Of a stretch of 46,379 nt of DNA, positions 6,001 through 46,379 are shown one piece after another. Source of the DNA: Macrostomum lignano (Eukaryota). The notes beneath the pieces were generated by a model. That model was not told the origin of the DNA, did not search any database, and saw only the letters and a list, made by a program, of their open reading frames with translations. Within the stretch, counting starts at the first letter, position 1; each line of letters begins with the position of its first letter. The translations under genes were made by a program, and so were the position numbers. The stretch covers positions 1 to 46,379 of the forward strand of contig NIVC01000060.1 in assembly GCA_002269645.1 (NCBI GenBank), given 5' to 3'.

Positions 6001-9000
6001 AACACCGGCACTGTTACAGTCACGAACATTTTGCCAAGAACTTTCGTCGCTCACCATAGCACCGCCACCGAAACGAACTGTTCAGGGCAGCCGTTGAACT
6101 CTGAGTTGCAGCTTCAGCTTCCGCTGTGGCCGCATCACTGACGGTAGCGGGAGGATGACTCAGCAACACAGCTGAGCAGTTCCGAGTTTCGTTTCGGTGG
6201 CAGTCGATCAAAGGCTTCAGAATTGGGTTCGATGTAGCGTACGTCCTAATGGGAGTGGCTGCTGACGAACTCAGAGCGGTCACGAAATATTTCGACTCGC
6301 AGTAATTTCCTGCGTATTTAATTGTTAAAAATATGTGCGAGAGTTCAAACAACTCAATGTCAGATGCAGCAGAGAAAATCTCACCAGGTGCGGCTGGCAC
6401 CTCACAGATGAACGGAAAGACGGCAGTCTCGCTGTCGCAGGGCACGGTGAACCACTGCATTCGCTCGCCGACCTCCGACACCACGCAGCCGCTGGTTGCA
6501 TTGCTGGGCAGCTTCCAATTGTTCAGATGGGCTGACAGAAGCCTGCCGTCGGAGGTTTCAAAGCTGCCGCTGGCGTTGCTGAACTCGCCATCGATATGGA
6601 TGAAGTTGTAGGCCGGGACCGAGCTGAAACATAAGTTATCCAAGATATGATTCGATTGCATCTATCTGTAGAATGTTGCATGTGAATGGTTTCAGTTTAG
6701 CTCAAACTCTCACAGGTTCAATTTTCCAAAAAGGGCTTTGAAAATCTGTAGCTCAGACTCCGTAGTCATCTTTGCTAGCCGTCCTCTTTCGTTCCAAGCA
6801 AGAGACTTGCAGATCTTGTGAGCAGTTTGCCTCGTTGCGATTGTATGAGGCTGGCTGGAGTCCGAGAATGGAGCCCAGTAGCAGAGTTGGCCATGACGGA
6901 AGGTGTTGATGGGACAGTCTGCGGGCAGGGGTCCCAGTAATGCAGTTACGATTGTGTACTACATTTTTGTACTTTTGTATCGCTGAATCCCTGGCCTGCG
7001 AGGCACGTTACGGTAGGGTGTACAGGGTACACTGGGTACAGTACAAGGACATGGGTCTTTGCTCGCTCCAACGTGACTGAAGCCCTCTCAGGACGCCAGG
7101 ACACCAACCACCTGATGCTAGTTTCATAACACACAGGCTGGCGTAAAATCAAAGCGATTAGGGTGTGACTACATGTGCGTAGCCGAATCTGAGTCGGCGT
7201 CAGAGTACACGGACCCTTAGCTGCCACCTTGGCAACCGAAAGAAAAAAGACGGATGAGCCCACTCAGTGTACTTGACGGCAGGAACTAATACAAGCAGCC
7301 AGGCACAAACCTCCATAGGCTTCCCTTTTGATTCTGTTCTCGCTTCATATTGTTATTATTCAGCTTGTCCTGGAGTGGCGTGGGTGCCTGCAGACTAGTG
7401 GAGCGGGCGAGCAAAAGCTAGACAAAGTCAGATAGAAAAATCACACACACGCCCAGCAGAGCGCGGCGTGACTACGAGCTACCTAAAAGTCAGCCCGCGC
7501 GGGGAAACCATTCCACCACACACCCCACCAGCCGGCCGTTGGGCTTTACCCCAAACCAGCCAATCACAACGCGGGGTGAGAGAGGAAACTCGTCAAGCCA
7601 GCAACTTGGCGCAGCTAACCAGCCGCAGCGGCTCTCAGTGCCAGAGAGAGCTAAAGTCGAAAACAAAATGAGAAGCATGGGTGGCGGAGGGGCAAAGACA
7701 AAGAGCTCTTGCACTGTGAAAAAGTTCAAAAGGCAATACTACGTTTATCACTACTACGAGCATTGAAAGCAGTTTTAAAACAGTAGTCTGGGAAAGGGGC
7801 TTTCTAGGACAAAAATTATCGCAGCCTCTATAATGCACAAACGATTAACTTTATTATTCCCAAAGAGAATAATCACATCCCGAAGGATGTGAAGCTAACC
7901 GGAATCGAGCTGTATTTGGAAGTCATTGAGCCAAAGACTGCACTAAAAGCGGATTATCTCAGGGCAATAGAGAGAAGGAAATTGATGTTGCATACACGGC
8001 CTACATGTGTCGAGATAAGCGAAACGAAACTAGAACAAACATCTGCATTAAAGAGGGATCATGCAGCAATCCAAGGTATATCATTATTAATATGAGAAAC
8101 CCAAATAGCATTATACGCTACATGCATGGAGACGTGAGGTCCATTCAGCATGAAATCAGTGATAATCTTTACCCTGCACTGCCACAAAATGGAGATTTCA
8201 GTCAGAACAAGATTAGCAAATTTTACAGCGAGTTGGTCGACTTGGCTGTGAAAGAGAACAATGGAATTGCTATCACTGCTCTTCAATATGGAACTCTATA
8301 TCCGATGTTTGGCGCTGATGTGTCTGCCAGACAAATGCCTACTGATAACAGCCCTGTGAATATCGTGACTAACATTGAGAGGACTACCGCAACACCCGTG
8401 GACCTGTACATTATCTATGCATTTGAGAGAAAGGTGAAGCTTAACACGATCAAAAATTCATCCAGTAAAGTTTGAAGATTTTTGTGGGTGAAAAAAAATG
8501 GAAGCGATTGCTGAAAGACTAAATAATATTATTTCTCGCTCTAAGGAGAGCATTTCTATTACAATAACTGGGCGAATTAATGACTCAAACGGGATATTTG
8601 TTCAAAAATTAGAGCAGGCGATTCGCCTGGATCCAGGTGCTAAATACCATGTCTATCTTAACGACTTCACTGGTTGGTCAAACGTTCCCAATGTGACGGC
8701 AGCAAATAATAAGTTTTATTACAAATGGAAAGGTGCAGCAGCAGAACCTGTGGTATTCCCTGTGAGCACGCAAAGTGTGGATACCTACAAATACTTTCTA
8801 GAAAACGTCTTTACTAAAAGAGGCCATTTTGAGACACCTGATCTGATTAAGCCAGAACTGTTCCCTATCAAACTAGCCTATGATCTCACTGTAATGAGAG
8901 TGGTCATGCAAGTTCACAAAGATGCGGAGGTTGAGTTTAAAGATGACACTTGGTATAGGGAATTGGGATTCAAGAAGAAAGTTTATAAGGCAGAATCCGC

Positions 9001-12000
9001 GGCGCGGACTGTCACTCAAGCGCCGAAATCATCGGGGGTCGTTAGCATGGCCCGGGAAAGTGTAAGCGGTTTGTTTGCACCCAATATTGCAGACATTGTA
9101 AAGGGTTTGAATATTCTAATCAGAAGTAATCTCAGTCTTGATTGGGTATTTAAGGGAAAGCGAACGAATATTTTGTACAACATCTCTAACTCTGTAGCTG
9201 GAGGACAGATGCTGGTAGAGAAACCAAATCCAGTGAAAAGAGTTGTATTGAGTAATAAGGAGATTCACGAGATTGTGCTACAGTTTGAGACTGAAGATGG
9301 GGTGGGTGTTGATTTCAACGGTGAAGAGTTTGTATTGACGTTGATCATTGAGAGAATGTGAGAAAAAATTACAATTGCTTAATGATTTCTCCAAAGTTAT
9401 AGTATATCTGTCGTAATCTTTTACGTAGGTTGCTCCATACTTAAGAAACCAGTGTCTTTGGAGAGCTAGATTAATATTAGGGACATTGATATCAACACCA
9501 AGCCAATATTTTCTCATGTACTCACTGCATTCTAGTTTGCATCGGTACTTACTCTTGTAATAAGGCTCGTGCCTTTTGTAAAAAGAACCTGGAGAGACGA
9601 TTGGAAGCATTTTTATTGAGAATTTAATTCTATCGGAGGATGAGCACCCTGGGTTTGGGGATTGGCGCTAATTTGATTGTCTTGGCACACTTTTTGCAAG
9701 GCTGGGAATATGGAGACTGATATTTTGTGCTAGACTTATGAGGCTGCGTAAATTTTTGATAATAAATGTAGAGACAGATTTTTGGGAGGGGCAGTTACCC
9801 TTTTTCCTGATCTCTTTGGGAATAATAAAGTTAATTGTTTGTGCATTATGGAGGCTGCGATAATTTTTTTCCTAGAAAGCCCCTTTCCCATACTACTTAA
9901 AACACATAAGAGGAGGCAGTTGAATATTCAAAATGAATATATTACCAGGAATTGGGCAGCCACGAATTTCGAATCTCGTAGTGACTTGATCTGCATCAGA
10001 AAAGTTAATGAAAAGCATTCTAGTCCGTAACACTGCCGGCAGATATTGCTCAAAACCGAGACTCAAGTTGAACAGCTGGAATAATTCAAATGGGTGAAAT
10101 TATTTTTCAAAATATGCGTTTTTGGAAACTAATAATACATTTTATTTAATAAAAATTTCGTGGGTCTGTTGCTACGACTGAGTCAATTCGTAAGGTTAGA
10201 TCAGTCTTGTATCGCTGAAGTGGCTCCGATCAATATCCTAGGGCAACCACTAACCAAACTATAGTCACCCATTTTACACTGCTAAATTGCACAGAAGTAT
10301 AAAACCTTATATGAGCTATTAATAGACATCTCACATGCGCTGAACCGTGAAGTGTGACTGGACGGACGCTTTCATCTACAGGGCTTGCATAGGATACGAC
10401 GAATGTGGCTTTCTCTGACAGGCCGTTTAGTCTCCACCCTGTGAGCAAGTGCGCAGTTGCCAGCTGAACCTGAACTGTAGTTGGCGATGTTTGCGTGATT
10501 GTCAACACAGCGCTGCTGACCCAGTCGCAATCTGAAGTGAAGTTCAGCCATTAGCGTTTGAATTTCAGTTCTGATTGATTTTCCTAGGGCAACCGCCTCT
10601 CACCTTCAGGATAGCCCAGCAGTTCTAGTCTCAGCAGTCTCTTCCTCACAAATCTGATTGGCAGAATTCTGACTACTCTGGCAAGAAACGGCTTAGTAAA
10701 AGACATCCGAGTAGCCATTTCGTTGCCTGTGAGACCAGTTCTTATGATCTGTAATTGACGAAACAGTTTAAAAAGTAACATTGTCCTGCTTAGTAAAACA
10801 GTTGAATAGATAATAGGCATTTTAGAGCATAACGTAAATCTCACATGGCTAAGTCTTCCAGCAGAGTACTCAGTATAATTAAGCATTTCTCTCGAATTGT
10901 TTCCATACCAAATCCGTGCGGTCGTGACATAGCCGTCAAAGCCTCCAGTTGCGAAGTCCCAGACTCCGCTGCCCTGCCACACAATTCCGGTGATGCGGTG
11001 GATCACATCCAGCTGAATCTCCAGGAAGCTGCCGTCAGTGACTGCTGCAAAGTTGGAAATGCCATATTTTAGCCTCAACTATAAACTGCAGCACTGCTCA
11101 CAGCTGGGATCAATCAGCTCAATCAGCTCAATCAGCTCAATCAGCTGCCAAGCGACTCACAGTCAGAAAAGACGGCAGCGGGCGGCAGGCCGACCTCCTG
11201 GCCGCGATTCAGCGCTGCCATGAGCGGGGTCGGGTGCCGAAATGCGTCGTGTGGACTGGCGGCTGTCGCATCGCCGACTGACAGCTGATTGGCCATAATG
11301 CGACCGTCCTCGAGTCCGACATTTGAGTTGATGAAGTAGTAGGCAGCTGGAAATAAAAGAACTAGTTGACGTTAGAGTGACGCTGTTTACGAACTCCTGT
11401 AAACTCAGTTAAGTTGTTGTCGGAGTAAAGATTTGATGTAATCAGCTCACCAATGCTGGGATAGCCGTAGACTTCGAACTCGCAGAGTGAGAGAGTTCCC
11501 AGCGATGAAGGCTTTCGCAAGCCAGCGACTGAAGCAACCTGTTGGTTATTATAGATCACCTCTAAGACTTGTACTTCTCGTTGAGAGTGAAATAGCTGCC
11601 ATTTATTTTCTGTTTAAAATGACGGAATCGCTACCTTATTGACGTTAATCTTCCACAAATGGGACTTCATGAAGCCGCCAGTCCAAGTTTCCAATATCGT
11701 GACTGCTGTCGCGTCCCACGGAGCGGCCGTGCTGTTGCTGATGTAAACACTGGCTGACTGCATGTCCTCGGATAAGGCCTGGACTTTGTCTGTCGGATCA
11801 GGGGGGGGGGGTAAATATGGAGTCCAATAAGTGCGATTGATTTGTTTAAGGCGACACAGAAAACCTTCTGCAGCTACTGAGGACTCACCGAGTGTCTCGA
11901 CCATGTCGACTATAAAGATGAAGACGATTCGCTGCGCCACTCCGAGATCCACGAACCAGTACAGATAAGGATCGGCGGTGCCGGAGTGCTGGAAGCAACG

Positions 12001-27000: not shown

Positions 27001-30000
27001 CAATAGCTGCGGCTGAGCTGTCGGTTGCACATCTGCCCATTAAGGCAGGTGTAATCAGTTATTAGTATTAATATTGAACTTTCTAAAACATCCTTCTAAA
27101 AATCTAGTACATACCAGAATAACTAGACTGCTACTGAACCAAGCTTTCGAGGTTTTGCTTTGTTGACCCTCTGGTCCATTATAGCTTTAAGTACATGTAG
27201 ATTCGGGTTACAGAACCCACGGAGTGTTGTAAGCATACTGAAGTAGTAAGCAGAAGGTATTAAACTATTTAAATTACGGTGGTGTGATGAAGCTGCGTTC
27301 CACGGCAGTCTTGGCGTCCAACAGGCGGCCCCTGACGCCGCCCCAGGTGTGCTCGGAGCAGAACTGGTTGGCAGCGGTCCAGGTGACTCGGTTTTCCACC
27401 GGGTACCAGCAGCTGTGCATCGATGCGATCCAGCCGTCAGGACAGACTAGCAAAATGAGTATGACTTTTCAAGTAACCACGAACAGTGACATCAGAACCT
27501 TTAGCTGGAAGAAAACATAAAAAACAGAACTAACCATTAACTTTGCAGCCTTTCACGGAGTCAACGGTTATTTCTTCTGATGCATCGACGAAGTGAAACT
27601 TTATACTCAGCGGCGTCAGGAAAAACGGCATAATGAAGGTCTCGTTAGTGTAGGTGACTGGGAACTGGACAGGAGGGATGCAACTAAACGATTGTCGTAT
27701 GCCCGGAGTCTTGTAATTGAATCAATTTTAGTCCGAAGAAGATCCATAAATATGTTTATCATTTTTATTAGACCTCTATGATTTTTGAAAAATGCCTTGT
27801 TTATAATATAAAATTAATGTCTGCAAGAGAGTTGGGCCACCACAGCATGGCACACGGTCTCACAACTAAGTCGATTCTGCCTGCGAGCGTATTCTGCTAA
27901 CAGAAAAGCGCGCAGATTCTAGATGTACAGTTGTGTATTGACTTTCTAATCGTCAGGCATGTAAAATCTCTGTGTCTTGGTGGTCGGCCTTCGGACTTCC
28001 GACGATTAGGGTTAGGTAGGGTTTAGGTTAGGTCTTTAGGTTATGGATAGGGTCTGCTGTCAAATTGCGGCAGATAACTGTCGTAGACCCTGATTGAACA
28101 GAACTCCAACTTATGCCCCTCCTTTTGCGCATGGCGTTACGAGTATTACTTTGCCGGCTATGAAAGCTTTTAAAAGTTGACAGCTTCCATAAACTTCAGC
28201 TCACCATCCATAAGCTGTCATTCCAGGCGTGCGTCAGATTAACAAAGTCTTCGCCAGCAACCAGCTGGTAGGACAGCCAAAATCTGCTGTTTGCTGGCAG
28301 GCTGTCCATTGTGAAAGCGGTCACATAGTGGAGTCGAGTAAAGTTCAGCTGCACCAGAATCTCCGAGCCGCTACTCAGGGGCGCTGTTATCGAGTAGTCC
28401 GAGCTGTCGATCAGCGGACAAGCTGAGGGACAGTGCACGTTATTCACTTTATGGAACAATATCGAAGTTTTTCATGAATAATAAAATGAATATGCACGAT
28501 TTAAAATTATTCAAGCAATAGTTTTACTCTTGAAGTAACTAAATATTTGCAGGAGGGCTGCTGCCGGCACCTCTGGCGCAACGCCCTCTCGGCGACAGCG
28601 TCCCACAGCCGGCGCTGAGGCGATTCTGCCCATTCCGCCGACTCCTGAGCACACGCAAGTGCGTCATACACACGCTCACACGGGGTGTACAGCACGGCCC
28701 TTTTAATTTCTAATCGTCAGGCATGTGCACTCTCTGTGCCTTAAGGGCTGGCCCTAATGGAAAGTGAATCACACGACAACGCCTGGACCAATTTTTCGTG
28801 GAATCGAACCAGGAGTCGTGGAGCAAAAATCAGGCAGGTTTACCACTAAGCCCTCTACTTATGTAATCTTAGCATGCTACTTCGCTCGTAATAGTAGTCA
28901 TTCACAATGGGATGCTAAATTCTGTGTAATTTTGAAATTCAAGCTGCATTTGTACTGTATGTCAAAGGCATGTCTTCAGTGGAAAAAGGCAATGAATATT
29001 AGAAAAGAATATAATAGAATAGAATAGAATAGAAAAGGATAGCATAGAATAGGATAGAATAGAATAGAATAGAATAGAATAGAATAGAATAGAATAGAAT
29101 AGGATAGAATAGGATAGAATAGGATAGAATAGAATAGAATAGAATAGAATAGAATAGAATAGAATAGAATAGAATAGAATAGGATAGAATAGGATAGAAT
29201 AGGATAGAATAGAATAGAATAGGATAGAATAGGATAGAATAGGATAGAATAGAATAGAATAGAATAGAATAGAATAGAATAGAATAGAATAAAATAGAAT
29301 AGAATATAATATAATATAATAGAATAGAATGAAATAGAATAGAATAGAATAGAATAGAATAGAATAGAATAGAATAGAATAGAATAGAATAGAATAGAAT
29401 AGAATAGAATAGAATAGAATAGAATAGAATAGAATAGAATAGAATAGAATAGAATAGAATAGAATAGAATAGAATAGAATAGAATAGAATAGAATAGAAT
29501 AGAATAGAATAGAATAGAATAGAATAGAATAGAATAGAATAGAATAGAATAGAATGGAATATAATGAAATAGAATAGAATAGAATGGAATAGAATAGAAT
29601 AGAAATTCAGACGTACCGTTTGGACTAGGATAGCCGGCCACGTCAAGCTGAAGAAGGCACCGACTTGACCAGCCTCTTGGCTCAAAATAAACCAATTGAG
29701 TTTCAATCGGGCCATTGAGCGGCACGAGACACGGATAATTCTTGGCATCTGGGCACGATACGTAGTACAGGATCTGAGGGATGCGATGTCAAGAAATATA
29801 TCAGTTATTGTTTCTAACGCTTTAGTCCTAGTATAGTAATATAAAAGTATGTATTATGAGTTCTAATAACATTAATTTGCTATAGGACAAACTCCTAAAT
29901 AATTGTCATTTTGACTAAGGGTCAAAAGTCCAAGTTCCTAGTCAGTAAATAATAACTCGTAGATAAATTAATCGCAACTCAGGTGAGATTTAAGCGTTAC

Positions 30001-31669: not shown

Positions 31670-32360
31670 TGGTGTCTTCAGTGTGAAATTTGTAATTCTC
31701 AGTTAAGATGTTGCGCGTTGGTTCTCTAATAAGCGTCGGGTTTTATAGTTAAGAACCTGGCTAAGTCTTAAGGACGGAACGCATCGGTTTTTTCTATTTT
31801 AACAGCAGGATGTTGAAAAATGACAGCTGCAAAAGCGTATTTTTTCTAATGCGAAAAGAGTCGATTCCAATTTAACTAAAGCATCAGTTCTTGAATAGAA
31901 GCTACCGCGGGAATACTCTGGGCTGCCAGAAGGGTGTTTGTGTTCTCAATACTGTGCAACTGTGTAAAAATTGCCTCAAAGACAATTTAAGTCCATTGGC
32001 AGACATGGGTAAGAGTTCTTCTCTCTAAGGCTCTCTCAACTGAAGTAGCTAAATAGTAAAGAGGAAGGTAGCTACCTAGAGAAAAGTAAGCCTAATAGGG
32101 AGGGGTGGAATGAGAAGAAGAGTCAGAGGCGAAACGTTTGATCGGTTGACAGCCGCCATCACTTCTTCATCTAATGAGCAATAAAATCCCACGGCTGTTG
32201 TACAAAGCAAGAACCGCTAAATTGCGCCAAAAACCATATTTCCTGGAAAAATGGCAGGCCTGTTTTCGGTAAAAGATACACCGTTCATGTTTTTTAAATA
32301 AAAATTTCATTTTGCGATTTAAGTCTCAAAGATACATAATTGATATAATATTGTATTTTG

Positions 32361-32996
32361 CGCCAGCCCCAGGGGCTTTAGCACCAGCGGCTTTAGCACC
32401 ACGGGCTTTAGCACCAGGGGCTTTAGCACCAGGGGCTTTAGCACCAGGGGCTTTAGCACCACGGGCGCCAGCACCAGGGGCTTTAGCACCAGGGGCTTTA
32501 GCACCAGGGGCGCCAGCACCAGGGGCTTTAGCACCAGGGGCTTTAGCACCAGGGGCTTTAGCACCAGGGGCTTTAGCACCAGGGGCTTTAGCAACAGGGG
32601 CTTTAGCACCAGGGGCTTTAGCACCAGGGGCTTTAGCACTAGGGGCGCCAGCACCAGGGGCGCCAGCACCAGGGGCGCCAGCACCAGGGGCGCCAGCACC
32701 AGGGGCGCCAGCACCAGGGGCGCCAGCACCAGGGGCGCCAGCACCAGGGGCGCCAGCACCAGGGGCGCCAGCACCAGGGGCGCCAGCACCAGGGGCGCCA
32801 GCACCAGGGGCGCCAGCACCAGGGGCGCCAGCACCAGGGGCGCCAGCACCAGGGGCGCCAGCACCAGGGGCGCCAGCACCAGGGGCGCCAGCACCAGGGG
32901 CGCCAGCACCAGGGGCGCCAGCACCAGGGGCGCCAGCACCAGGGGCGCCAGCACCAGGGGCGCCAGCACCAGGGGCGCCAGAACCAGGGGCGCCAG
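32361..32996 (+). repeat. 15-bp GC-rich minisatellite (GCACCAGGGGCTTTA / GCACCAGGGGCGCCA), about 42 units
   Basis: Direct reading; TTTA variants dominate the left half and a pure GCCA variant fills the right half. Confidence 0.97.
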
Positions 32997-33499: not shown

Positions 33500-34803
33500 A
33501 TGGCTCCACTACGAAATTTGTCAGCTGTTCTCACTGTTCTTGCTGTCTGTTTCTTCTGCAACAGCTTTGTCTGGGCGGACCACCAGGCTAACGTGATACA
33601 GTACTTGAAGAACAACATAACCAACTACAGTCCCCTGCTCCCGCCCAGGATAGAGCCGAATGCTAAAATTGCTGTCAGGATGGACCCTCTGCTGACCCAC
33701 ATAACTGCGGTTGACACGGTGAAGCAGACGATACGAGTGAGCGCATTGCTTCAGGCAAAATGGGAAGAGGAGCGGCTGGTTTGGAATTCGAGCAAATTCG
33801 GTGATGTTACCGTTATTAATTGGAAAGTTGATGAAATCTGGAGCCCTTTGATTTTGATGTACGGTGTAGGACAGGATCAGGTGCCGCAATCAAAAACGCC
33901 AGTTTTCCTAACGTCGCAATCACCCAACTTAACCCAAGTCACGGCTCCATGGCGTCGCGTGTTCGAATTCACTTGCAAGTTTGACGTAAGCTAAGCCAGT
34001 TTCCCGTGGACATGCACGACTGCTCTATATCATTCTGCTTCATCGATCCTGAACGGCACAATTCTGGGGTAGAACCTGAGGTCAACAAGCTGGTTCCGTA
34101 TAACCCGCTAGTTCTATACCAAAATAGCAGCGAATGGACACTTCTGAACTTCTCCACGTCTGCAGAGTTCAAGGAGTACGCACTGATTCGAGGTTCGAGA
34201 AAGGCGCTGCTTCCAACGTACGAATTAAGGCTTCAGATCTGTCGAGTATCAAATTATTACTTCGTTAACATCATTGCACCGCTCATTCTGTTGTCTGTTC
34301 TTCAAGTGCTGGTGTACTTTGTGCCACTGGAGTCCGGTGAGAAGCTGGGATTCGGCATCACAATCATGCTCAGCTACACTGTGTTCCTACTGCTCCTGGA
34401 CGGCATTCTATCGGTCACAAAAGCTGCCATTTGTTGCATATTTCATCACGTCTGCGATGATTCTGTCCACAGGATCTCTCCTACTGACTTCTTTGACCAT
34501 GCGACTTCACTTCACGCCTGGAGATGATGGAATGCCAACCTGCCTTAAAGTCGTTCTCGTCCATTTCTAGGCCGTCTGCTGTGCGTGAAAGGTAGCGACG
34601 CGACGGTTTGGACGGAAAATAGCGACAATAGCCGGACCAACGTTAGAAAAGTGGATGGAAACGCCGGCCGGATTCAATCGGATTTGACGGTGGCAACAAA
34701 GTCTGTCGAGTGGCTGATGGTAGCGCTGGGTGTTGCAGCCACAGCCGCCCTCCTGGGCGGCCTCATCATCAGGCCCTACTGGGATTCGCCGTACAAATGC
34801 TGA
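33500..34803 (+). pseudogene. Intronless Cys-loop ligand-gated cation channel subunit A (nAChR-like), three frameshifts
   Basis: Signal peptide; Cys-loop CKFDVSQFPVDMHDC after removing a 5-bp TAAGC duplication (33987-33996); M1-M4 homology to copy B; further frameshifts near 34413 and 34566. Confidence 0.85.
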
Positions 34804-35478
34804 CTTGGCTTCACAATTGGCAGCTAACAGTTTCACTGAGGCTAACATCTTCCTTTATTTTTGGAGGAATAAGCGCGAGAAAATGCGCATCACGCATCAA
34901 TATTTTAAATGTTTAAATAAATAAATATTTTCGTCTAATCAAACACTACTACTACCAGCTATACATTTTCTGTCCACATGTACTTCTTGTCGCTGGATAA
35001 TCTTAAATTTAACAATAACTTCACCAAAAAATGCGTCGTTAGCAAAACTTTTCCATCCGTTTTTAGCTACTTAGAGTAGTTTCGAACTTTTATGAAACGA
35101 GAAACTTTAGTGAGTGAACTAAGAAAAGTTTGGTTGTTATGTAGCCAGAAACTTCGTTGCCAGACATTTCGGTGCCAGAGCAAGTGAGAAAGGAGAGTTT
35201 CAGAGAAGTGTATTATTATTAATTATATATGTATAATTAATATAATTAGTTTATTTAGTTAAATATATTTTTGATGGAGCGAAGGTTTATTATTATTTCA
35301 GAACCACTCGTAAAAGTCTACTTTTCAAACTAGAAGTGGGAGCGAGTGAAGATTCATAGAAACTTGTTTTGTAGAAACTTCGACAAAATATTAAAAGCAG
35401 TATTACAAAAAATTGCAAACTATTTAATTTATTATGCAGTTATTGTATAATTGCTAATTGTAGTGATCCGCTAGTTGA

Positions 35479-36451
35479 TGTTAGGCGTCCCACTTTGTCA
35501 GCAGTCTCCCTCGCCCTCGCCCTGGGTTGCTGTCTGCCGCTGGTCAGCTTCCCACCCCCCTTGGCCCGTCTGTTGCTGCCCTTGGCCTGTTCTGCCCTTC
35601 TGCGTCTCTGTTCTCAGCCCTCAGCTTCTCTGCTGTGGGCTGTCTCTGTTTCGTTCCCGTCCCGTTTTCCTCTGTCATGTGAGCAAGTCACATGACAGAC
35701 TCTGCGTTCTTCGAGTCCTAAAGTGCAGTAAACATGTTTACTGCACTCGTTGGCCCTGTTTACCGGGAGAATCACGTGCTTTCGGACCCCTCCCTTCTCT
35801 AAGGAGAGGAGTGACTCATGTTGCTAAAAATAGCAACTGAGTCACAGCCGCGTGTACTCTGGCCGGAGACCTCAAGTGACGTCAGTTCTAAAAATAGAAC
35901 GAGTCACGAGGTCTTGCGCGCACTGAGACCCTGCCTCGAGATCTCAAGTGACGTCAGTTCTAAAAATAGAACAAGTCACGAGGTCTTGTGCGTGGGTGTT
36001 TCCCGGCTATAAATAGGACCCCTCTCCCCTTGTTTCCGTCAAGGATTTGGCTTCTTATCTGCGGAGAATTCACTAAGATCCCGTGTGCGTCAGTGTCTAA
36101 CTAAGTGCCCTTTGCGTACTGAATCCGTTTGTACTGGTCTGACTGAGACCCCACTAAAGCCCAAGCCTAAGGGAGGCTAACACTGCCTTCCCAGCCACCC
36201 CTGAGCCCGGCGGGGATCTGCTGATCAGGACGCCTTGTTCATTAATCTGCAAATCTGCACGCTGTGCTGAGTTCGTTGACTTGTTTATTTCGTTCCGACG
36301 GGAAGCTCACCTCATCGAAGGCCGAGACCTGAAGGAACTGGTGGCAGCACTACCTACGCTACTGAGAGTTGAGAGAACTTCCCACTGAAGAGGCTCGAGT
36401 CTTAAGGTAATCTTAAGCGCCTAAATCGGGAAGAAACCCCAATCTATTTCA
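35479..36451 (+). mobile_element. LTR (973 bp, TG...CA) of a gypsy-type retrotransposon, internal region truncated
   Basis: Begins TGTTAGG and ends TTTCA, followed 1 nt later by a PBS; TATAAATA at 36008-36015; two 48-bp direct repeats with TGACGTCA. Confidence 0.8.
35871..36015 (+). promoter_or_regulatory. LTR U3 enhancer/promoter: duplicated 48-bp unit with CRE (TGACGTCA), then TATA box
   Basis: Units at 35871-35918 and 35943-35990; CRE at 35877-35884 and 35949-35956; AP-1-like TGACTCA/TGAGTCA just upstream. Confidence 0.6.
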
Positions 36452-36452
36452 C

Positions 36453-36472
36453 TGGTGGCAGCGGTGGGATTC
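36453..36472 (+). other. Primer-binding site complementary to the tRNA-Leu 3' end
   Basis: TGGTGGCAGCGGTGGGATTC is the reverse complement of ...GAATCCCACCGCTGCCA-CCA, a eukaryotic tRNA-Leu 3' end. Confidence 0.85.
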
Positions 36473-37105
36473 AAAGACCTTCCAGGCCACCCCGAAAAAC
36501 CCCAAGCATTTCACAATCCACATTAATTCCACTCATCAAACAAATAGCATCAGTAAATTCAATGAGTAAATTTAACCGCAGGCACTAACACTCCAGTACA
36601 CAGTAAAACCAGGCACCGAATATCCGGTATTCGTTGTTAATATGCGCTTATTTGGCTTGGCTCGTCCGTCCAACTTTCATTCGTACCCACTCATTGTTGC
36701 GATAGCAAAGCAATTAACAATAGAAATTAAAGGCACTACGAGTAAAAGTGCCACTAAAATTGGTTTGGACGTTATATGGAAAGCTTTCAATCATGACTTT
36801 CATTTTATTTTTAGCAGAATTAATAATTAAAGCAGCTCTACTATATACTGCGTGCGCCCGTTTGCTTGCTTCTCCTAATCTGATCAATCAATCAACTTGC
36901 ACAGTTTTCACCACTCAGGTAAGCGTTGTGTTAGGAGCACCACTCAAATATGCATACTGTATGCGTGTGGCTCGCGTCAGAAGCCACACAGCAAGCCAAT
37001 CATGAAACAAATCCATTGTTTGGACAAACTCCATATTTATAACCAAAGTTTGATTGAATTTCTCTTGAGAACCGAGGCATACCAAAGCATAGCTAGCTGA
37101 TAAAC

Positions 37106-38410
37106 ATGACGCCGGCTCTATTTGTGACTGTCATCACACTATTGCTGACAGCGGCTGGTGTCCAGGGACAGCAGGACTTCGAGGGTGAACTTGACACGTA
37201 TTTAAAGAACAACATCAGCTATTTCAGCCCGAATCTGTTACCAAGAATTAACCAGGACAAGGTGATCCAAATCGTGATGGACTCGCTTCTGTCTCAGATT
37301 GTGTCTGTAGACACGGCAAAGCAGAGCATAAAAATATCAGCATTCATTCAGGCTGTGTGGGAGGAGGAGCGACTGGTTTGGGATCCGAAAAAGTTTGGCG
37401 GCGTGAAAGTGATTAACCGGGACGCGTCAGAGGTCTGGTTTCCTGTTATCATGGTGTATAATGGCATTGGAGACGGACAGGTTCTCGCGCCGCAGATGCC
37501 GGTAGATCTTTTGTCGACAACAGTGAACAGTACGCAAGTTACTGCAATGTGGCGTCGCGAGTTCGAATTCGCCTGCCAATTTGACGTGTCAAAATTCCCT
37601 TGGGATCAGCACGACTGCGAGTTGGAGTTCTTCTTCAGCGACCAGGGGCACGGAAATTCGATGGTAATTCCAATAGCGAAGACCAATCACCCATTCGATA
37701 TAAAGGCGCTATACACAGAGAGCAGCGAGTGGACATTGGTGAATGCATCCTCAAAAGCTGAATATAGGGCTTACAATTTGATTCGCGGAGTAGCTGCGAA
37801 GCAAATTCTCCCATCTTATATCATCAGGGTGCAGTTTAAAAGAGTTTCAACGTACTATTTGATAAGCGTAATCACTCCGCTGTTGCTGTTGACTCTGCTT
37901 CAAGTGCTGGTGTACTTTGTACCACTCGAATCCGGCGAGAAACTGGGATTCGGCATCACAATCATGCTCAGTTATACCGTGTTTCTGCTGCTTCTGGACG
38001 GCATCCTGCCGAAGTCGCAGTCAACACCAGCTATTGCATCGTTCATCACGTCTGCCATGATCCTGTCAACGGTGTCACTGCTGTTAACTTCGCTAATCAT
38101 GCGATTTCACTACGCTCCGGAGGGCACCAAGATGCCCGCATGTGCCCGAGGCTTCTTTGTCCGATTCCTTGGACGCGTGTTCTGCGTGAACGGCTCGTCC
38201 AGTGCGCAGGACAGTGAGACTCCGACTGCTTACGCAACGGCAAGTGAGTCCAGTGTGCGCAAGATGGCCGACTCAGCTCCCGTGGCGAAGTCGGAATGGA
38301 TTGTGGCTTCCTACGCGATTGAGAGGCTGATGGTGGCTCTGGGAGTTTTCGCCACAGCTGCAATCATCGGAGTGTTTGTTTTGAAACCCATGATTCAAAA
38401 TCAAGACTAA
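37106..38410 (+). CDS. Intact intronless Cys-loop ligand-gated cation channel subunit B (divergent nAChR-like, non-alpha), 434 aa
   Basis: Signal peptide, Cys-loop CQFDVSKFPWDQHDC, M2 GEKLGFGITIMLSYTVFLLLL, four TM segments, short M3-M4 loop; no vicinal CC. Confidence 0.92.
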   Translation: MTPALFVTVITLLLTAAGVQGQQDFEGELDTYLKNNISYFSPNLLPRINQDKVIQIVMDSLLSQIVSVDTAKQSIKISAFIQAVWEEERLVWDPKKFGGVKVINRDASEVWFPVIMVYNGIGDGQVLAPQMPVDLLSTTVNSTQVTAMWRREFEFACQFDVSKFPWDQHDCELEFFFSDQGHGNSMVIPIAKTNHPFDIKALYTESSEWTLVNASSKAEYRAYNLIRGVAAKQILPSYIIRVQFKRVSTYYLISVITPLLLLTLLQVLVYFVPLESGEKLGFGITIMLSYTVFLLLLDGILPKSQSTPAIASFITSAMILSTVSLLLTSLIMRFHYAPEGTKMPACARGFFVRFLGRVFCVNGSSSAQDSETPTAYATASESSVRKMADSAPVAKSEWIVASYAIERLMVALGVFATAAIIGVFVLKPMIQNQD

Positions 38411-39768
38411 GCTGTTTACGAGCGTAAGAGGAATCTACGAGCTATCAACGCGCAGTGAATTTAAGACTGTTTGTTTAAATAATCTTGCTCGAAATTTAAC
38501 CCACTGATAACTCAGAGTGAGCCTTATTTTTGAAAATTATTGTTTTAATTTTTTCACACATTTGAGGAGGTGAAAATCAGTCGATAATTGGAGTTTACTG
38601 GTCTTCAACTTGTACCCTCGCTGTGATCTTTGTTCGTATTCACGCCCAAGAAATGTTTATAATCTCAGCTGCACACAATTATGCTCTATCTAAATAAACT
38701 CTATTGGACATTATCCTTTCGCTTAAATATAAATTTTTTCTCAACGCTATCTTCATAAAATTTTCTGTCCTAGCTAAATCTTTGAAATAATACATTCGAT
38801 ATTTTACGAATATATCAGATTTATGTGACGCTTCTAATTGTGACCTTGTGACGCTGCCATCTAAGAACTCTGACAGCGCATTTTGTTTTTGTTTTAACTT
38901 CTTAGGGGGACAGTGGGGGTACACATAATTCGTCAATTATTTTACCTTAGTTGTCCAGGGACAAAGACATTCGAGTCCTTGCTCGCTAGATTACAAAATA
39001 TTGTAAATGGGAAGTATTATACTAGCTCCACTCCTATTGCTTTATGTAAAGGATATACGAGGGTAATGGTGTGTGTTGTGTTAATGTGTGTTAAATCTTG
39101 AAGAAATATCTAATTTAGATGAAGAAAAAAAAACTGAGTCTGTATTTTACCCTACAGAACCAAAAAACCCTGGGGAACAGCACCACTTCAGTCCAATTAC
39201 AAGCTTATAACTATAGACATAGAACTAAAGCTCCATATAAAACATAGATATAACGATTTACATTACTTCCATTCCGGGATTTCCGGGATTCAATACGCTC
39301 GTATTATCCTGGAAAATCGTTATGTCTATGCTCTCTTTAGAGGATTAAACATGCATTTTGAGGGAGCTGCAATATTGTAAAAAGCCTGACGGCCAAATGA
39401 TAAATCAAATTTAGTATAGAAGTTTCCAAGCCAATTGAGCCTAGGAGCAAGCAGTTTAATCCTTATTGGGAGAATCAAGCTATTGAACACTTGCTTTTCA
39501 TTGTCTATGGCCCAAAAAATGGGGACTATGGAGCAACCAATTTGAGAATTAATCCTTTTCACAGTGCTCGTATATCCTTCACGAATAACTTTACTGAAAT
39601 AACGTCTGCAAATAGATGGCATATCAAGAAACGATTGACATTAACACTTTGATTTCAGAGAAACCAATCAAACAGGCAAAGGAAAAACCATGGCATACAG
39701 TATAAGCCGAGAACAATCGTGTCTCTCAAAACAGTGTTGGACAGATTGAAACCAAACCCGATCAATGT

Positions 39769-40932
39769 TCAGAGAATTTCTTCCTCGTTTAAGCAGTGCG
39801 GGATGAAGCGAAGCATCTGCCGAAACCAGCCACCGCATTTGGCCTCTGTGATCTCAGCCGTTGTCTCCTCCGCAATCCGATGAAGAACGAGTACGCACCA
39901 CTCGAGCAGTGTTGTCTCTGGCGGTGGATTGTCCAATTCGATTTGCACCTGTGGCTGTGCAAGCTGCCGCTTGATGGCCGCCTTCAAACAGGAATGCGCA
40001 CACTCGGTCGGGTTCAGAATGGAGAATATGGAGGCAGTACTACAACCTGCCAGTTCAGCTCAAACTGCTGGGGGATCCTCAGCCGGCTATGGAAGCGAGC
40101 GCCATCAATGGTTACTAAGAAGTTCTCGGCATTGTCTACATCATCTCGATTGTTGACAGCATGGAGCAGCTCTTTCGACAAATGCTTGAAACACGTTTGA
40201 AGTCAGTGTGTGACCGACAATCTTGTGGTGTACCAAGCCGAAATTTGGTGCCACTGCCTGCAGGAAATTGACCTGAACCCCACGTTGCGTGTGCAAAACA
40301 CGTCGGACTCGCTGGCCACGTCTGCTGCGTCCTTGGGACCGGCGAGTTCAAATGTTGAAACCGGTCTCATCAACATAGATGAGGTGATGTTCAAGTGGAA
40401 CACCAGTGAACCAGTGAGAAAATTCTCGTCGGCGTGCCCGATATTCAGGACTATTCCTGACCACTGGCACATCGGCGTCTCGACCAAGGCACTTCAATGT
40501 AATCAGCTGTTTGTCCAAGGTCTGGCTTACAGCTGTAGTACTCACTTCGAAGCCTGGATAGGTGTCAGTCAACTTGCGTCGCAACTCTTTCAACGTCATT
40601 AGAGGATGGATATCCAGTGATGAAAGAAGTAGTTGGATGTGTTTCTCTTCCAGTTTCGATGCTCGATCTCCACCCCGTCGTGCGCGGTCCCGGCGTCCCG
40701 TGATTTCATAGCGACGCCTGATAGAATAAACTGTTTTTCTCTTTACGTCCAGCTATCGCGAAATGTGCTCAGCACTATCACCTCTATCGATGGCAGCGAT
40801 AATCAGGTCGTACTTTTCGTTGCTTATCTTGCGATAGGGTTCTCGCCCTGCAGGATTCTGCTCATCTACTCCATCTTGGGCTGTAGCAAAACTTTCGTCA
40901 CTGCTCTGCTCGCTAAATTCTTCGTCTGCCAT
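39769..40932 (-). pseudogene. Tc1/IS630-type DDE transposase pseudogene
   Basis: HTH region, then IYVDETGFN, IDGARFH, LPPYSP(F)LNPTE. In-frame stops near 40755 and at 40348; frameshifts near 40172 and 40015. Confidence 0.88.
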
Positions 40933-41063
40933 GTCTATGTTTGTCTAATGAAATCTGTTATTTTCTATGGTCTAAGGCTTGCGCAACTGTGGAAAGGATT
41001 AATAGCGCGCCCAAATTCTCAAATTGGTTGTTCCATGGACCCCCTTTCGGGCCATAGACAATG

Positions 41064-41265
41064 GATAAATAATCAGCGGTCCCAGTGCGTGACAACGATT
41101 GTCTGGCGAGCGCCGGTAGGCGCGAGCCATAGACAAATCGTTGCCACGTGCTGCGACCGCTGATTCTTTGCATTGTTTTTCTATTTGACGATCCTAAAGA
41201 AAATGCATTGCTTGTAGTAATGGATTGTTCTGCATTAAAAATGTGAATAATGATCGTCAAATTGC
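41064..41265. mobile_element. 202-bp insertion in the right TIR, flanked by a 9-bp direct repeat TAGACAATG, containing a 95-nt hairpin
   Basis: Repeat at 41055-41063 and 41266-41274; imperfect palindrome AATCAGCGGTC...GACCGCTGATT at 41071-41165. Confidence 0.65.
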
Positions 41266-41589
41266 TAGACAATGAAAAGCAATTGTCTTCAATAGCTTGA
41301 TCTTCCCACTAAGGATTAAATTTCTTGCTCCTAGCTCAATTGGCTTGAAAAAAAGCAAGTCTATTTTTTTCAAGCCAATATTTATCAAATATCTCGCTAG
41401 AAATGTGATAACACTGGCGCTGCTTTATGCTTTCATATTGATGAAAGCTATCTGTCCAATCGAATTTCAGTAGCAAACGGATTTTCAGGCGATCTTTGAG
41501 CCCAACCTGTAGTTGGTCGGGGTGAAACGGCATTAAAACTATTTTATCAGACGTACCAGTTGTCAATGCGATCAGCAATGCACTGGAAA

Positions 41590-42873
41590 ATGAGACATAA
41601 AATGCTATTCTCATTCATACTGCTGGTTTCGCTTTTAGCCTCGACACTAGCTACTGATTTCGATGTCCTGCTAATGCAGCACCTAAACAACAAAATTGCA
41701 AACTACAGCCAATGATTCTGCCAATATTAAACAAGACAAAGAAAGTCAACGTGTCGTTTCACATCATGGTCAGCCCATTTGTCTCAGTGGACACTGCCAA
41801 GCAGAACATCAAAATCGCTGCCTACGTTTAAGCCAGCTGGGAGGAGGAGCGACTCGTGTGGAATCCTGCCGACTTTGGTGGCGTCGTTCTACTAGCTGGG
41901 ACCCAGCGAAAATTTGGTACCCAATCATCATGACATACAACGGTAACGGCGATGAACAGATTCTGATTCCTCGGATTCCTACTTACACTGGCTTCTAAAA
42001 ATTCAAGCGTGACGACGGTTGCTTCATCCTGGCGCCGGGAGTTCGAATTTTTTTGCCAATTCAACATGTCCGACTTTCCGTACGACCAGCACACTTGCGA
42101 GCTGCTGTTCTTCCTTGCAACTCAGGCCAATCCTGATGCAATGCGGCCTGTTCGCAGCGCAATGCCCATGCGGGTGACAGGAATTTACAAGCCTAGCAAC
42201 GAGTGGATATTGAAAATTGCAACAGCAGATTTGGAAACCAAAAAATATTTTATAATCGAAGGACATAACGAGACCGAACCTTCGAACTTTGTTCTGCGAT
42301 TGCACTTGTAGCGAGTGTCAACGTACTATTTCATCAACATCATCACGCCTTTGCTGCTGTTGACTTTGCTCCAGGTGTTGGTGTACTTTGTACCCCTGGA
42401 GTCCGGTGAGAAGCTGGGATTCGGCATCACAATCATGCTCAGCTACACTGTGTTCTTGCTGCTCCTGGACGGAATCCTGCCGAAGTCGCAGAAGATGCCC
42501 GCCATTGCCCTGTTCATCACGGCCGCCATGGTGCTGTCCACCGTGTCGCTGCTGCTGACATCGCTGACCATGCTGTTCCACTACAGGCCGGAGGGCAGCC
42601 GCATGCCGGAATGCGCTCGGGCGGCCTTTGTTCGATGCCTGGGCCGCCTGCTCTGCGTCAGCGGCGCCACAGGTGGGCCAGCAGAGTCCGGCTGAAGCTG
42701 AGGGCGATGGCAACTGCGTGCGGAAACCGCCTACGGCGGAAGAGAAATCGGTCGATTCAGACTGGGTGGTGGCCACCCGCGCTATCGAGAGATTCTTGTC
42801 GCTGTTAGGAGTGGTTGCTACCGCCATCATAATTGTAGTCTTTCTGATGGGGCCGTATCTTCAGTTCTCTTAA
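41590..42873 (+). pseudogene. Intronless Cys-loop channel subunit C, pseudogene
   Basis: Signal peptide, Cys-loop CQFNMSDFPYDQHTC, identical M1-M2 block. Frameshifts near 41710, 41890, 41985 and 42670; in-frame stops at 41829-41831 and 42309-42311. Confidence 0.88.
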
Positions 42874-43444
42874 TGAAACTTGAATAACTGAGATTTGAAT
42901 GCTTATGAAAGGCATTGGCATTCTATTGACTACCATATTCATTGATACTCTTTGCAATGGTTTTGTTTTATTTTCTGAATAATCTTCTGAATTGAATTTT
43001 CGGAATTTTTTAGCTCTGAATTTAGGAAACAGGCATTGATCCCCGGGCCTTCTTGGGCAGTGACTAGATAGATCTGTAGTGAAACATGCGTGATCAATTT
43101 TTTCATGCATAGGCTAATGCCAATCGCGGAAGGGCTTGAATAAACGAAAGTAACTAGTCACCGTTGCCATTGGATACGCACTAGTCAAGCGCGAAATGCA
43201 GGCAATGGAAATAGGCTAGGCGTTTTGCTAATGCAATTAACGTTTGGGCAAATATTTGAATAGCTAGCAATGCGGCCCGTTCGTCCAGTTGCCATTGCTG
43301 GGCGCTAAATCTGCTTCAGTTGCAGAGTAAACAGTCTGTATTTCAGCGAGAGCAGAAACCGTGTATAATTAATTAAGTTCTTCCTAGCTAGTTAATTGAT
43401 GGTAGCTAGGAGAGGAAAGATTAAGTGCTCTCCCTATAACAAGA

Positions 43445-43795
43445 TTATTATTAATAATAATTACAAAGGGTTGTGGCTTCATCCACTATACTGCTCTTCT
43501 GCAATTCTGAGGCAATTCTGGCCATTCCGCCGAGTCCTGAGCACACACAAGCGCGCTAATACTGTAAGCAGGCACGCATTCGTGCACACGCTCACACAGG
43601 GCCTTTTTGACTTTCTAATCGTCAGGGGATGTACACCCTCTGCGCCTTGGGGTTTGGCCCGCATGTGGGCGAGAATCGCAGGACAACCCCCTGGGCCAAC
43701 TTTCGTGCACAGGCCCGATATGCATGTGGCCGCGTACTGAACCGATCCCGGGGGTCGCGGGGCGAGTCAGACGGCTCTGCCTACATCGAATACCG
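43445..43795 (-). mobile_element. tRNA-derived SINE, family 2
   Basis: CCATTCCGCCGAGTCCTGAGCACAC...TTTCTAATCGTCAGG is shared with 28620-28750. Confidence 0.75.
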
Positions 43796-44828
43796 AAGTC
43801 CTCAGAACTTCCGAACTTGGCAACAGAAATCGGCCACAATTCAAAATCAAATCAGAATTCAAGCTTCCATTTAAACACGTACTGTTAAAAATTATCCCTT
43901 AAAAAGCTTTTTTGAGGCAGAGAGGCAGGAATTACAGATGCAAATTACATATGTAACATGTAAATATTAGACAGGTGAGTTATAATTACATCAAATTTTT
44001 CCTGATCAAACATGAATAGGTACAAAAAATCGAAAAAATACAAATCGAGCTACAAGTTGCGAAGTTTGAATGCAGGTACCAGGTAGGGAGGCTTGGGTCC
44101 ATGTGATTTTGCAGCAGTGCATTTAGCTCCGTGGCAGATTTTGTCTGAATCGCATTGAGTCCTAGAGAGTCTTACTAAAGAGCTAGGGATTCTCCCAATA
44201 GAAAATTTCCGGTAGTAACCACATATTAAACTCATGCTTTTCTGGTATGAGAGGTCTTCATTTCTATGTACTCTAACGTGGGGGTACAGTTACATCGGTC
44301 AGTCATCAATACATGTGTATACCATGTCGCTATGTCCCCTATAGCCTCTTTTCTAAGAATCGGTGGCAGTTCTTGCGCTCGTACATGCAGATCTTACCAC
44401 CTCATCAACACTGACGTTTCCTTATTGCCTATGTTAATTCCACGTTCGGAGCACGGAAGCAGCCTGACGCAAACACCAACGTGGGGGAGCGAGGCACGCA
44501 AGCCCCATAAAACCCTATAGACTTGGGACATAATATTTCGACGAAAAGAGTAAAATAAGCTATCAGCAACGATTAAGGAAAAAGCGATCGCCATTATGAA
44601 TAAGGATAAAAGACACCACAGAGGATAAAACTTGACTCTGCGCAAACAGACAAGACGAGCCGACACAACGCTAGAAGACCTTAAAACCATATCGGGGGAG
44701 GTGGGTGCGCGCATGGCAGAGGGACGAAGAGGAGCGGGGCGACGGAAATAAAGAATACATGACGCAAAAAGTGTTCAGAGCAAGGGAGAGAGAACCATCG
44801 AGACCGGTGCCCGACCAGCTATTGACCA

Positions 44829-44864
44829 CCGTAAACGTCACCCCCTAAAGGGGCACGCTTACGG
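44829..44864. other. 36-nt GC-rich stem-loop at the edge of an unclassified element (about 44300-44870)
   Basis: CCGTAAACGTCACCCCC-TAAA-GGGGCACGCTTACGG; composition switches to AT-rich immediately after. Confidence 0.5.
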
Positions 44865-45729
44865 GTAATTAAGAGCAAACGTTTGATTACTTTCTACGTG
44901 TCTGTCAGTTGAATTACATGAAGTAGAATATATTTTTAAAATATAAACTAAAAAATACAGATGGAGCCAGACAGACTTAACGTCAGATACCCCAGAAAGA
45001 TAATACAAGATTGAACAGAGTTGATGTAGCTAATAGCCACATGTTTGTACTGTAGATATGACGATATCCTGGAAATTTCGTCTAAAACCTAAGAATTGAG
45101 GCTGTGAACTGAGCATTAGGATTAAAATGTTAATTACATATCCTACTGACATGTCCCATTCCGAAAAGTTATAAAAATAGCACCGCTCAACTCATCCTGT
45201 TAAAATTTTTGTTACATAGTCAGAAGCTGAGAATGGTAAAAAAGATATTCATAAAACTAATAAGTCGAGCTAGGCCATTTTTATAATTCTTAAGCACAGG
45301 AAATGTACGAAGAACATCAATTTAACATACATGTAGAATCCTAATTTTCTAAGCATATTAGGATCTTGTAACATGTATACGAAAGGCAAGATATCAAAAG
45401 ATGAACCAGGGACTACTTAAACTAGTTTAAGAAGTCCCTGAAGATGAACATTAGGTCTGCCTCCAGTCAAATGCAATAACAATGTTTGCGCTATGCTATG
45501 CTATGCCACTCAGCTGCGGAACATACTACTATCAGTACAGCGTGTTTTTGGTACTCAAATTTATTCGTCATCGTATCGATTGGATCTTGACTATAAAATA
45601 TTTGAACCAACATTGGTGAGTACTAAGCAAAGCAAGCACAAAAATACTTTTTCGTTGATACATTTATAGGAAAGATTCTCGTTTAACCAATAGACCTCAG
45701 TCAAAACACTTTCTAGGACTGCAACAAGG

Positions 45730-46379
45730 ATGTTTTCTCAAGTAATCCTAATCGGTTCTCTCTTCACGTATTCAGCAGCAACCGATTTCGATGTCCTGCT
45801 GATGCAACATCTTAAGCAAACCATAAAAAACTACAGTCCTTTCATACTGCCGCGAATTAATAAGACCAAAACTATTAAAGTAGCTACGGACATCATGGTC
45901 AGCCATCTGGTCTCAGTGGACACCGCCAAGCAGAACTTGAGGATATCTGCCTACTTTCAAGCCAGCTGGGAGGAGGAGCGACTCGTGTGGAATCCTGCCG
46001 ACTTTGGTGGCACCCAGCTCACTCGCTGGGACCCAGCGCATATCTGGTATCCGACAATCATGATATACAATGGCAACGGCGAGGACCAAGTTCTCGTGCC
46101 TCAGATCCCTGTTGCATTGTTATCGTTAAGGCCAACGCTGACCATAGTCACAGCATACTGGCGCCGGGAGTTCGAGTTTTATTGCGAGTTTAGCATGGTT
46201 GACTTTCCATACGATCATCATGTTTGCGAGCTGTTATTTATTTACCATAATCAAGGCTATCTCGATTCAATCATTCCTGTTCCGAGCACGGCCCCTCTGC
46301 GTGTGCAGGGAATCTACAATCCGAGCAACGAATGGATTCTGACCAATGCCACCACACACTTTGAAAAGAAACTTTACCA
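45730..46379 (+). CDS. Intronless Cys-loop channel subunit D, 5' part, open to the window edge (missing from the ORF track)
   Basis: Hand translation MFSQVILIGSLFTYSAATDFDVLLMQHL...ASWEEERLVWNP...IWYPTIMIYNG...CEFSMVDFPYDHHVC...SNEW, with no stop before the end. Confidence 0.88.
   Translation, partial: MFSQVILIGSLFTYSAATDFDVLLMQHLKQTIKNYSPFILPRINKTKTIKVATDIMVSHLVSVDTAKQNLRISAYFQASWEEERLVWNPADFGGTQLTRWDPAHIWYPTIMIYNGNGEDQVLVPQIPVALLSLRPTLTIVTAYWRREFEFYCEFSMVDFPYDHHVCELLFIYHNQGYLDSIIPVPSTAPLRVQGIYNPSNEWILTNATTHFEKKLY

Follow-up and report, generated by a model that had tools for sequence, protein, structure and literature searches.

The 46,379-nucleotide stretch of Macrostomum DNA analysed here (contig NIVC01000060.1, called the window below) ends in a tandem array of single-exon genes for nicotinic acetylcholine receptor (nAChR)-like subunits of Cys-loop cation channels. 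A tblastn search of the whole 46-kb window with the protein of the second copy (copy B) as the query revealed four such copies, A to D, all on the plus strand, and no further ones. Their start codons lie at 33500 (A), 37106 (B), 41602 (C) and 45730 (D), i.e. at intervals of 3.6, 4.5 and 4.1 kb, and the array spans ~13 kb in all. An earlier note, made from this DNA alone, had described four co-oriented intronless paralogues about 4 kb apart; number, strand and spacing were all recovered, but A and C turned out to be pseudogenes and D is cut by the end of the window. The main features are as follows.

33500..34803, plus strand: copy A, pseudogene of an nAChR-like subunit; its orthologue in the Macrostomum lignano locus L001 (see below) is an intact open reading frame (ORF) of 434 amino acids (aa)
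37106..38410, plus strand: copy B, intact single-exon gene for a predicted 434-aa Cys-loop cation-channel subunit
37937..38005, plus strand: GEK cation-selectivity motif and pore-lining M2 helix of copy B, including the 9' Leu (residues 278-300, GEKLGFGITIMLSYTVFLLLLDG)
41602..42873, plus strand: copy C, pseudogene; the L001 orthologue of M. lignano is intact, an ORF of 426 aa
45730..46379, plus strand: copy D, N-terminal 216 codons, from the signal peptide to loop C, with an open frame; the window end cuts the gene

State of the four copies

Lesions were called by aligning each copy to its orthologue in L001, the reference locus of M. lignano. Three frameshifts interrupt copy A: 5 bp are duplicated in tandem at 33987, 2 bp are missing at 34414 and one base is missing at 34563. 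A further deletion, of 3 bp at 33861, stays in frame but costs the YNG motif its invariant Asn. Copy C has accumulated six frame-changing indels, two adjacent ones of which cancel each other. Those at 41713, 41774/41781, 41886 and 41973 involve a single base each, and that at 42668 is a deletion of 8 bp. Substitutions have in addition turned codon 89 (CTA>TAA) and codon 249 (AAG>TAG) into nonsense codons. Copy B, with no lesion across 1305 bp, is the only one of the four that is demonstrably intact. The translation of the 216 codons of copy D, a paralogue 49% identical to B, meets no in-frame stop.

Frameshifts and stops of this kind might be assembly or sequencing errors, in which case all four copies would be functional; Macrostomum assemblies are long-read based and repeat-rich, and single-base indels do occur among the lesions of copy C. 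We nevertheless consider this very improbable. The lesions include a 5-bp tandem duplication, 2-bp and 8-bp deletions and two substitution-type nonsense codons, and none of them falls in a homopolymer run. We treat A and C as real pseudogenes because of this character of the lesions, because the neighbouring copy B is clean, and because C also carries a frameshift, at a different site, in an independent database version (P0003).

The copy B protein is a nicotinic-type cation-channel subunit

In the copy B protein, Pfam recognizes both the extracellular domain (Neur_chan_LBD, 1.2e-25) and the four-helix membrane domain (Neur_chan_memb, 2.9e-21), each above the gathering cut-off. The protein matches the human alpha7 nAChR with E = 1e-40, being colinear with it from the N-terminal helix through M3 and then again in M4, and the match to 5-HT3A is weaker (1e-24). 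Because of this colinearity with full-length alpha7, the coding sequence (CDS) of copy B is complete in a single exon and has no intron; the A, B and C genes of M. lignano are likewise uninterrupted ORFs colinear with alpha7. The AlphaFold2 model (mean pLDDT 73.8) consists of a beta-sandwich followed by the helices M1-M4, and Foldseek matches it to nAChR chains with E ~1e-26. The Cys-loop reads C157-QFDVSKFPWDQHD-C171 (C-x13-C), with both Cys, the Pro and the Asp invariant in 6/6 family sequences and FPWD as the family motif, and ESGEKLGFGITIMLSYTVF, the cation-selectivity motif with Glu at -1', is kept with the 9' Leu across all paralogues. The retention of the GEK motif and the 9' Leu and the short M3-M4 loop, which the earlier note had read in B, were all found there: ESGEK, the 9' Leu and a loop of ~60 aa make up the family pattern of all four copies, B included. 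Copy B thus belongs to the Cys-loop pentameric ligand-gated ion channel (LGIC) superfamily, and to its cationic nAChR branch.

A segment WRREFEF (B residues 149-155, 37550-37570), directly preceding the first Cys of the Cys-loop, is invariant in all family members and stands in place of the alpha7 segment YLPPGIFK at the end of loop E.

A TATA-like element is found ~80-140 bp upstream of the ATG in A, B and D (in L001, the elements of A and B are in the same place), and AATAAA occurs within 300 bp downstream of A, B and C. These signals weakly suggest that A-D are separate transcription units.

The classical acetylcholine-binding signature is missing from the whole family

To compare the residues of the acetylcholine (ACh) site, we used an alignment of 119 sequences, namely six from the family and the 113 nearest single-domain relatives, drawn from an exhaustive hidden Markov model (HMM) search of 1.84 billion representatives. 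The column of the loop-B Trp (alpha7 W149, the cation-pi residue) is occupied by W in 92/113 relatives and by S, I, S, A, H and N in the family; copy B, whose loop B reads CELEFFFSDQ, has S there. At the loop-D Trp, W is found in 81/113 relatives, as opposed to F, L, I, Y, Y and F in the family, with F in copy B. The Cys-Cys pair of loop C is present in no family member, copy B having YNLIRGVAAKQILPSY at this place. The three departures that the earlier note had listed for B (no vicinal cysteines, no loop-B Trp, Phe for the loop-D Trp) are therefore all there. Only 16/113 relatives lack all three features, and 21/113 have both Trp residues without the Cys-Cys pair. The loop-A Tyr (Y118) is retained in the family, and loop B is hydrophobic in all paralogues (FFFS, FCFI, FFLA, FIYH, LFLN). 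Judged by these columns, the canonical ACh site is dismantled in the whole family, both the aromatic box and the vicinal cysteines being gone.

A relationship to the schistosome 'Cys-less' LGIC clade (PMC9874803) was also considered and rejected, since the family keeps both cysteines of the Cys-loop.

A small, diverged family known so far only from Macrostomum

The paralogues share 45-54% protein identity. A fifth one, P0002, is known as a protein only; it shares ~50% identity with B, C and D, and the window contains no counterpart of it. The family thus comprises at least five paralogous lineages (A, B, C, D and P0002) plus fragments. Identity is distributed very unevenly along the protein, reaching 95% in M1-M2/M2 (residues 271-300) and 82% in M1-M3 but 46% in the extracellular domain, with the lowest values in loops F (24%), B (26%) and C (34%). 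For the M1-M3 segment, comparisons among paralogues give a synonymous divergence (dS) of ~0.9-1.0 and a ratio of nonsynonymous to synonymous divergence (dN/dS) of 0.08-0.15. These estimates show strong purifying selection on the pore, with the ligand-binding loops as the most variable parts. Gene conversion as the cause of the nearly identical M2 is ruled out by the dS of ~1 in that segment, and the conservation of the pore is attributable to selection instead. Between the repeat units only the CDS can still be aligned, the flanks being unalignable, and the duplications are therefore old.

A phylogeny with nAChRs, proposed in the earlier note as a check, was inferred by neighbour joining with 100 bootstraps and included no cephalopod chemotactile receptor. 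It recovers the family as a lineage-specific clade of Macrostomum sequences only, in 100/100 bootstraps. The stem of this clade is long, every outsider being separated from the family by a distance of 1.74 or more, as against no more than 0.87 between its members. Inside the clade, A groups with B (76/100) and C with D (97/100). The nearest outsiders by distance are alpha7/9/10-like nAChR subunits of a bivalve, amphioxus and a brachiopod, which are ~25% identical, and the best candidate for the sister group appears in only 39/100 bootstraps. No close relative beyond M. lignano was found by the exhaustive HMM search of the 1.84 billion representatives, and a scan of metagenome contigs with B yielded none either. 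A profile search of a protein set clustered at 90% added one M. lignano fragment, P0014, which agrees with the reference B at all of 181 aligned residues. Looking up contigs by exact sequence gave no match for B, P0002 or P0014. The family is thus shown, in these trees and searches, to be a long-branch clade encountered so far only in Macrostomum, with alpha7/9/10-like nAChRs nearest to it.

The strongest HMM matches outside Macrostomum, from a hemichordate, bivalves, an annelid and a tardigrade, seemed closer than nAChRs. They were rejected as special relatives because they are long fused gene models whose whole-protein scores sum at least two matched stretches.

A syntenic locus in M. lignano and the decay of the window array

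The best protein match to copy B is P0001 (434 aa, 94% identical), whose cluster-mate is M. lignano PAA92206.1; the latter shares 95% aa identity with B. The syntenic locus, L001 on scaffold NIVC01000059.1, carries A, B and C in the order and orientation of the window.

7884-9188: A, intact single ORF, 434 aa
10001-11305: B, intact single ORF, 434 aa
12825-14105: C, intact single ORF, 426 aa
16333-16674: 3' fragment of a copy resembling C and D, limited to M3-M4, at the position that corresponds to the start of D in the window

This fragment is followed by a GIPC1-like gene. The 5' two-thirds of D seem to have been lost from the reference haplotype through a deletion of at least ~1.9 kb. The members lost hence differ between the two versions, A and C in the window and D in L001. 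Nucleotide identity of the CDS between the two loci amounts to 95.8% for A (end to end), 96.6% for B and 94.9% for C, with dS of 0.076-0.093. The dN/dS values are 0.37 (A), 0.29 (B) and 0.40 (C); they do not differ from one another, and each departs from neutrality (p ~1e-3 or below), which shows purifying selection on all three genes as far as this pairwise comparison can tell. Since A and C do not differ in this respect from B, their disablement in the window is judged to be recent, and B to have been maintained.

Macrostomum lignano is a neopolyploid with three subgenomes, which differ by ~2-2.4% in single-nucleotide polymorphisms (SNPs) and by many long insertions (PMC10733133). With dS ~0.08 to the reference, the window locus is either a diverged haplotype, a homeolog or a sister-species version of the M. 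lignano locus. In a neopolyploid genome redundant copies may be lost, and the decay of A and C would fit this. In the Mlig_3_7 scaffold record of M. lignano, the A and C orthologues are not called, the annotated genes being B and the GIPC1-like gene only. The annotation of this genome is transcriptome-guided (PMC5730564), and its calling B but not A or C hints at B as the member expressed in whole-worm RNA.

A retrocopy as the founder?

The earlier note envisaged that the expansion was possibly seeded by a retrocopy. Genes of M. lignano have ~5 introns on average (PMC5730564), and the single-exon structure is thus unusual in this genome; it would agree with an origin as a retrocopy. No poly(A) remnant was found in the 3' flanks of the units, where the AATAAA signal is present but an A-tract is absent, and no intron-bearing parent gene was found, the nearest outsiders being only ~25% identical. 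Retroposition is consistent with the missing coding introns; it gained nothing from the search for the other two marks.

Other features of the window

Between positions 227 and 31421, the minus strand holds a series of long ORFs (325, 215, 206, 213, 164, 166 and 191 aa, among others) that look as if they were the exons of a single large gene for an extracellular protein. Among them, the ORF at 1451-2098 encodes a fibrinogen C-terminal domain (2.7e-9), another has a weak match to the F5/8 type C domain, and for the longest no annotated homologue was found in the protein database. The intron-rich gene that the earlier note placed beside the array is represented by no more than this series of ORFs with one fibrinogen-C domain. 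On the opposite strand (plus), adjacent ORFs of 156 and 287 aa at 8005-9361, with a GC content of ~40% and no Pfam match, may represent an unclassified mobile-element or virus-like insertion.

Just upstream of the cluster are two tandem arrays, (TAGAA)x121 at 29000-29604 and a 15-bp minisatellite (GCGCCAGCACCAGGG, x42) at 32360-32996, both of which produce long spurious ORFs on both strands. Within the cluster, an 85-bp inverted repeat pair with 88% identity (39423-39507 and 41266-41351) flanks ~1.9 kb between B and C that contain three broken ORFs and have no counterpart in the M. lignano reference locus. The flanking repeats, which resemble terminal inverted repeats, and the absence of this stretch from the reference suggest that a transposon has inserted here. 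Another segment specific to the window is located between A and B (~35139-36645). The intergenic ORFs match nothing in Pfam, and no Rfam or tRNA match was obtained in the window.

What kind of receptors are these?

We favour, with a probability of about 0.75, the explanation that the array belongs to a small clade of single-exon nicotinic-type Cys-loop cation channels, so far seen only in Macrostomum, that is gated in a non-canonical way and is decaying at the window locus. An already intronless gene was duplicated in tandem long ago, giving rise to at least five paralogues (A, B, C, D and P0002), in which the cation pore stayed nearly invariant while the extracellular binding loops diverged and the Trp/Trp/Cys-Cys signature was lost. 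The proteins would assemble into pentameric cation channels and respond to a ligand other than ACh in its classical binding mode, and the divergence of loops B, C and F would adjust each paralogue's specificity for ligands or partners. A chemoreceptive role is one candidate among several.

Four points weigh against parts of this explanation. The intronless state applies to the CDS, and the genes may have introns in their untranslated regions. Phe or Tyr residues remain at loops A, B (at adjacent positions), C and D in some paralogues, and an unconventional amine site may therefore persist. The dS of 0.08 is ~3x the mean SNP divergence of the M. lignano subgenomes (2.4%), so the window possibly comes from a sister species and its reading as a case of redundancy loss is uncertain. 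Finally, the family is underrepresented in protein databases, given that even the reference annotation omits A and C.

The earlier note went further and saw in the array a candidate family of chemosensory receptors, whose members would be produced in sensory cells and opened by food or substrate molecules, in convergence with the chemotactile receptors of cephalopods. This is an analogy, and we regard it as unlikely. The family does share the architecture of those receptors, being derived from nAChRs, intronless, clustered and stripped of ACh-site residues (PMC11526382); the conserved pore combined with hypervariable loops B, C and F, the hydrophobic loop B of all paralogues and gene death in both versions of the locus point the same way. 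On the other hand, only ~5 paralogues are known, and positive selection is not seen (dN/dS of 0.29-0.40 between orthologues). Orphan nAChR-like channels with altered sites exist that have no known sensory role, such as Alpo4 (PMC10338036), and expansions in bivalves have been tied to development, immunity and stress rather than to chemosensation (PMC6896357). The birth-and-death expansion proposed in the same note is borne out as to death (A and C here, D truncated in the reference), yet with ~5 known lineages it is a small one, and the pseudogenes may reflect the loss of redundant copies in a neopolyploid rather than a turnover of the sensory kind.

Also conceivable in principle are accessory or structural subunits that co-assemble with a canonical alpha subunit in ordinary ACh-gated receptors, which would make their own site residues dispensable. 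Vertebrate beta1, alpha5 and beta3 co-assemble with canonical alpha subunits in this manner. The strongly conserved nAChR-like pore, Cys-loop (FPWD) and M2 pore-lining sequence agree with such a role, and the absence of the Cys-Cys pair is usual in non-alpha subunits, as illustrated by the 21/113 relatives with both Trp residues but no pair. Such subunits, however, normally keep the loop-B Trp (92/113 relatives), which every family member has lost, as it has the loop-D Trp; moreover, the five paralogues sit on a long private branch, and their loops differ as though functionally important. We hold this possibility to be quite improbable. The structural part of the earlier note, a tandem array of intronless cation channels devoid of the ACh site, corresponds well to our preferred explanation: the genes are a single-exon nAChR-derived set, and the aromatic box and the vicinal cysteines are absent family-wide. 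The chemosensory part, argued from likeness, we would put at rather poor odds. As it stands, the finding is a description of a small uncharacterised gene family and its partial decay, not of a demonstrated sensory system.

Comparison with known systems

The vertebrate alpha7 and alpha9-10-type nAChRs provide the best matches in sequence and fold, sharing the Cys-loop, the GEK motif, the 9' Leu and the four-transmembrane topology with the Macrostomum proteins. The latter are set apart by an identity of ~25%, the absence of equivalents of W149, W55 and C190-C191, an M3-M4 loop much shorter than the aligned alpha7 segment, and the lack of coding introns. A flatworm-specific cation channel with such an unusual binding site would be of interest to comparative pharmacology.

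Alpo4 from Alvinella pompejana (PDB 8BX5) is an orphan nAChR-like channel gated neither by ACh nor by serotonin (5-HT) (PMC10338036). It is likewise a lophotrochozoan orphan on an isolated branch that lacks the loop-C Cys-Cys pair, but it keeps the aromatic box (loop-B W159, loop-D W65), both residues of which are lost in the Macrostomum family, where the loss of the site has thus gone further. Copy B matches Alpo4 (1e-25) less well than it matches alpha7 (1e-40).

Cephalopod chemotactile receptors are intronless nAChR derivatives that have lost ACh binding and detect hydrophobic molecules, Octopus bimaculoides having up to 26 of them (PMC11526382, which reviews the studies of van Giesen 2020, Allard 2023 and Kang 2023). 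The Macrostomum genes resemble them as clustered, intronless, nAChR-derived cation channels without the ACh-binding signature residues. However, sensory expression and hydrophobic ligands have been demonstrated for the cephalopod receptors, and the Macrostomum family is smaller and exhibits no detected diversifying selection. It also forms a separate Macrostomum-only clade (in a tree without chemotactile receptors), so the likeness is one of analogy and would be convergent, as the earlier note assumed in speaking of another lineage. An independent conversion of a nicotinic receptor into a few environmental chemoreceptors in Macrostomum, beyond the transition in cephalopods, seems improbable on this analogy; if true, it would add a further nAChR-to-sensory transition, one that could be tested genetically in a transgenic, regenerating model animal. 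Both transgenesis and RNA interference exist for M. lignano and make the function of the family directly testable.

The closest parallel in gene architecture comes from molluscs, where intronless nAChR genes are arranged in tandem; nAChR genes have expanded in annelids too (Jiao et al. 2019, PMC6896357). These authors explained the pattern by retroposition followed by tandem duplication, and reported diverse binding domains and some inactive copies (PMC6896357). The architecture is thus less novel than the earlier note assumed, having already been published for lophotrochozoan nAChR expansions, which share with the Macrostomum family the single-exon CDS, tandem arrays, lineage-specific clades, diverged binding domains and some dead copies. 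Copy numbers differ, with tens to hundreds of copies there (99-217 nAChR genes in five bivalves; PMC6896357) as against ~5 known here. Among the species sampled by Jiao et al., intronless nAChRs occurred in molluscs only, and no flatworm was included (PMC6896357); the Macrostomum family is a known gene architecture in a phylum outside that sampling. Should its channels be gated by a non-cholinergic ligand, the repurposing of retroposed, tandemly arranged nAChR genes seen in molluscs, annelids and cephalopods would extend to Platyhelminthes.

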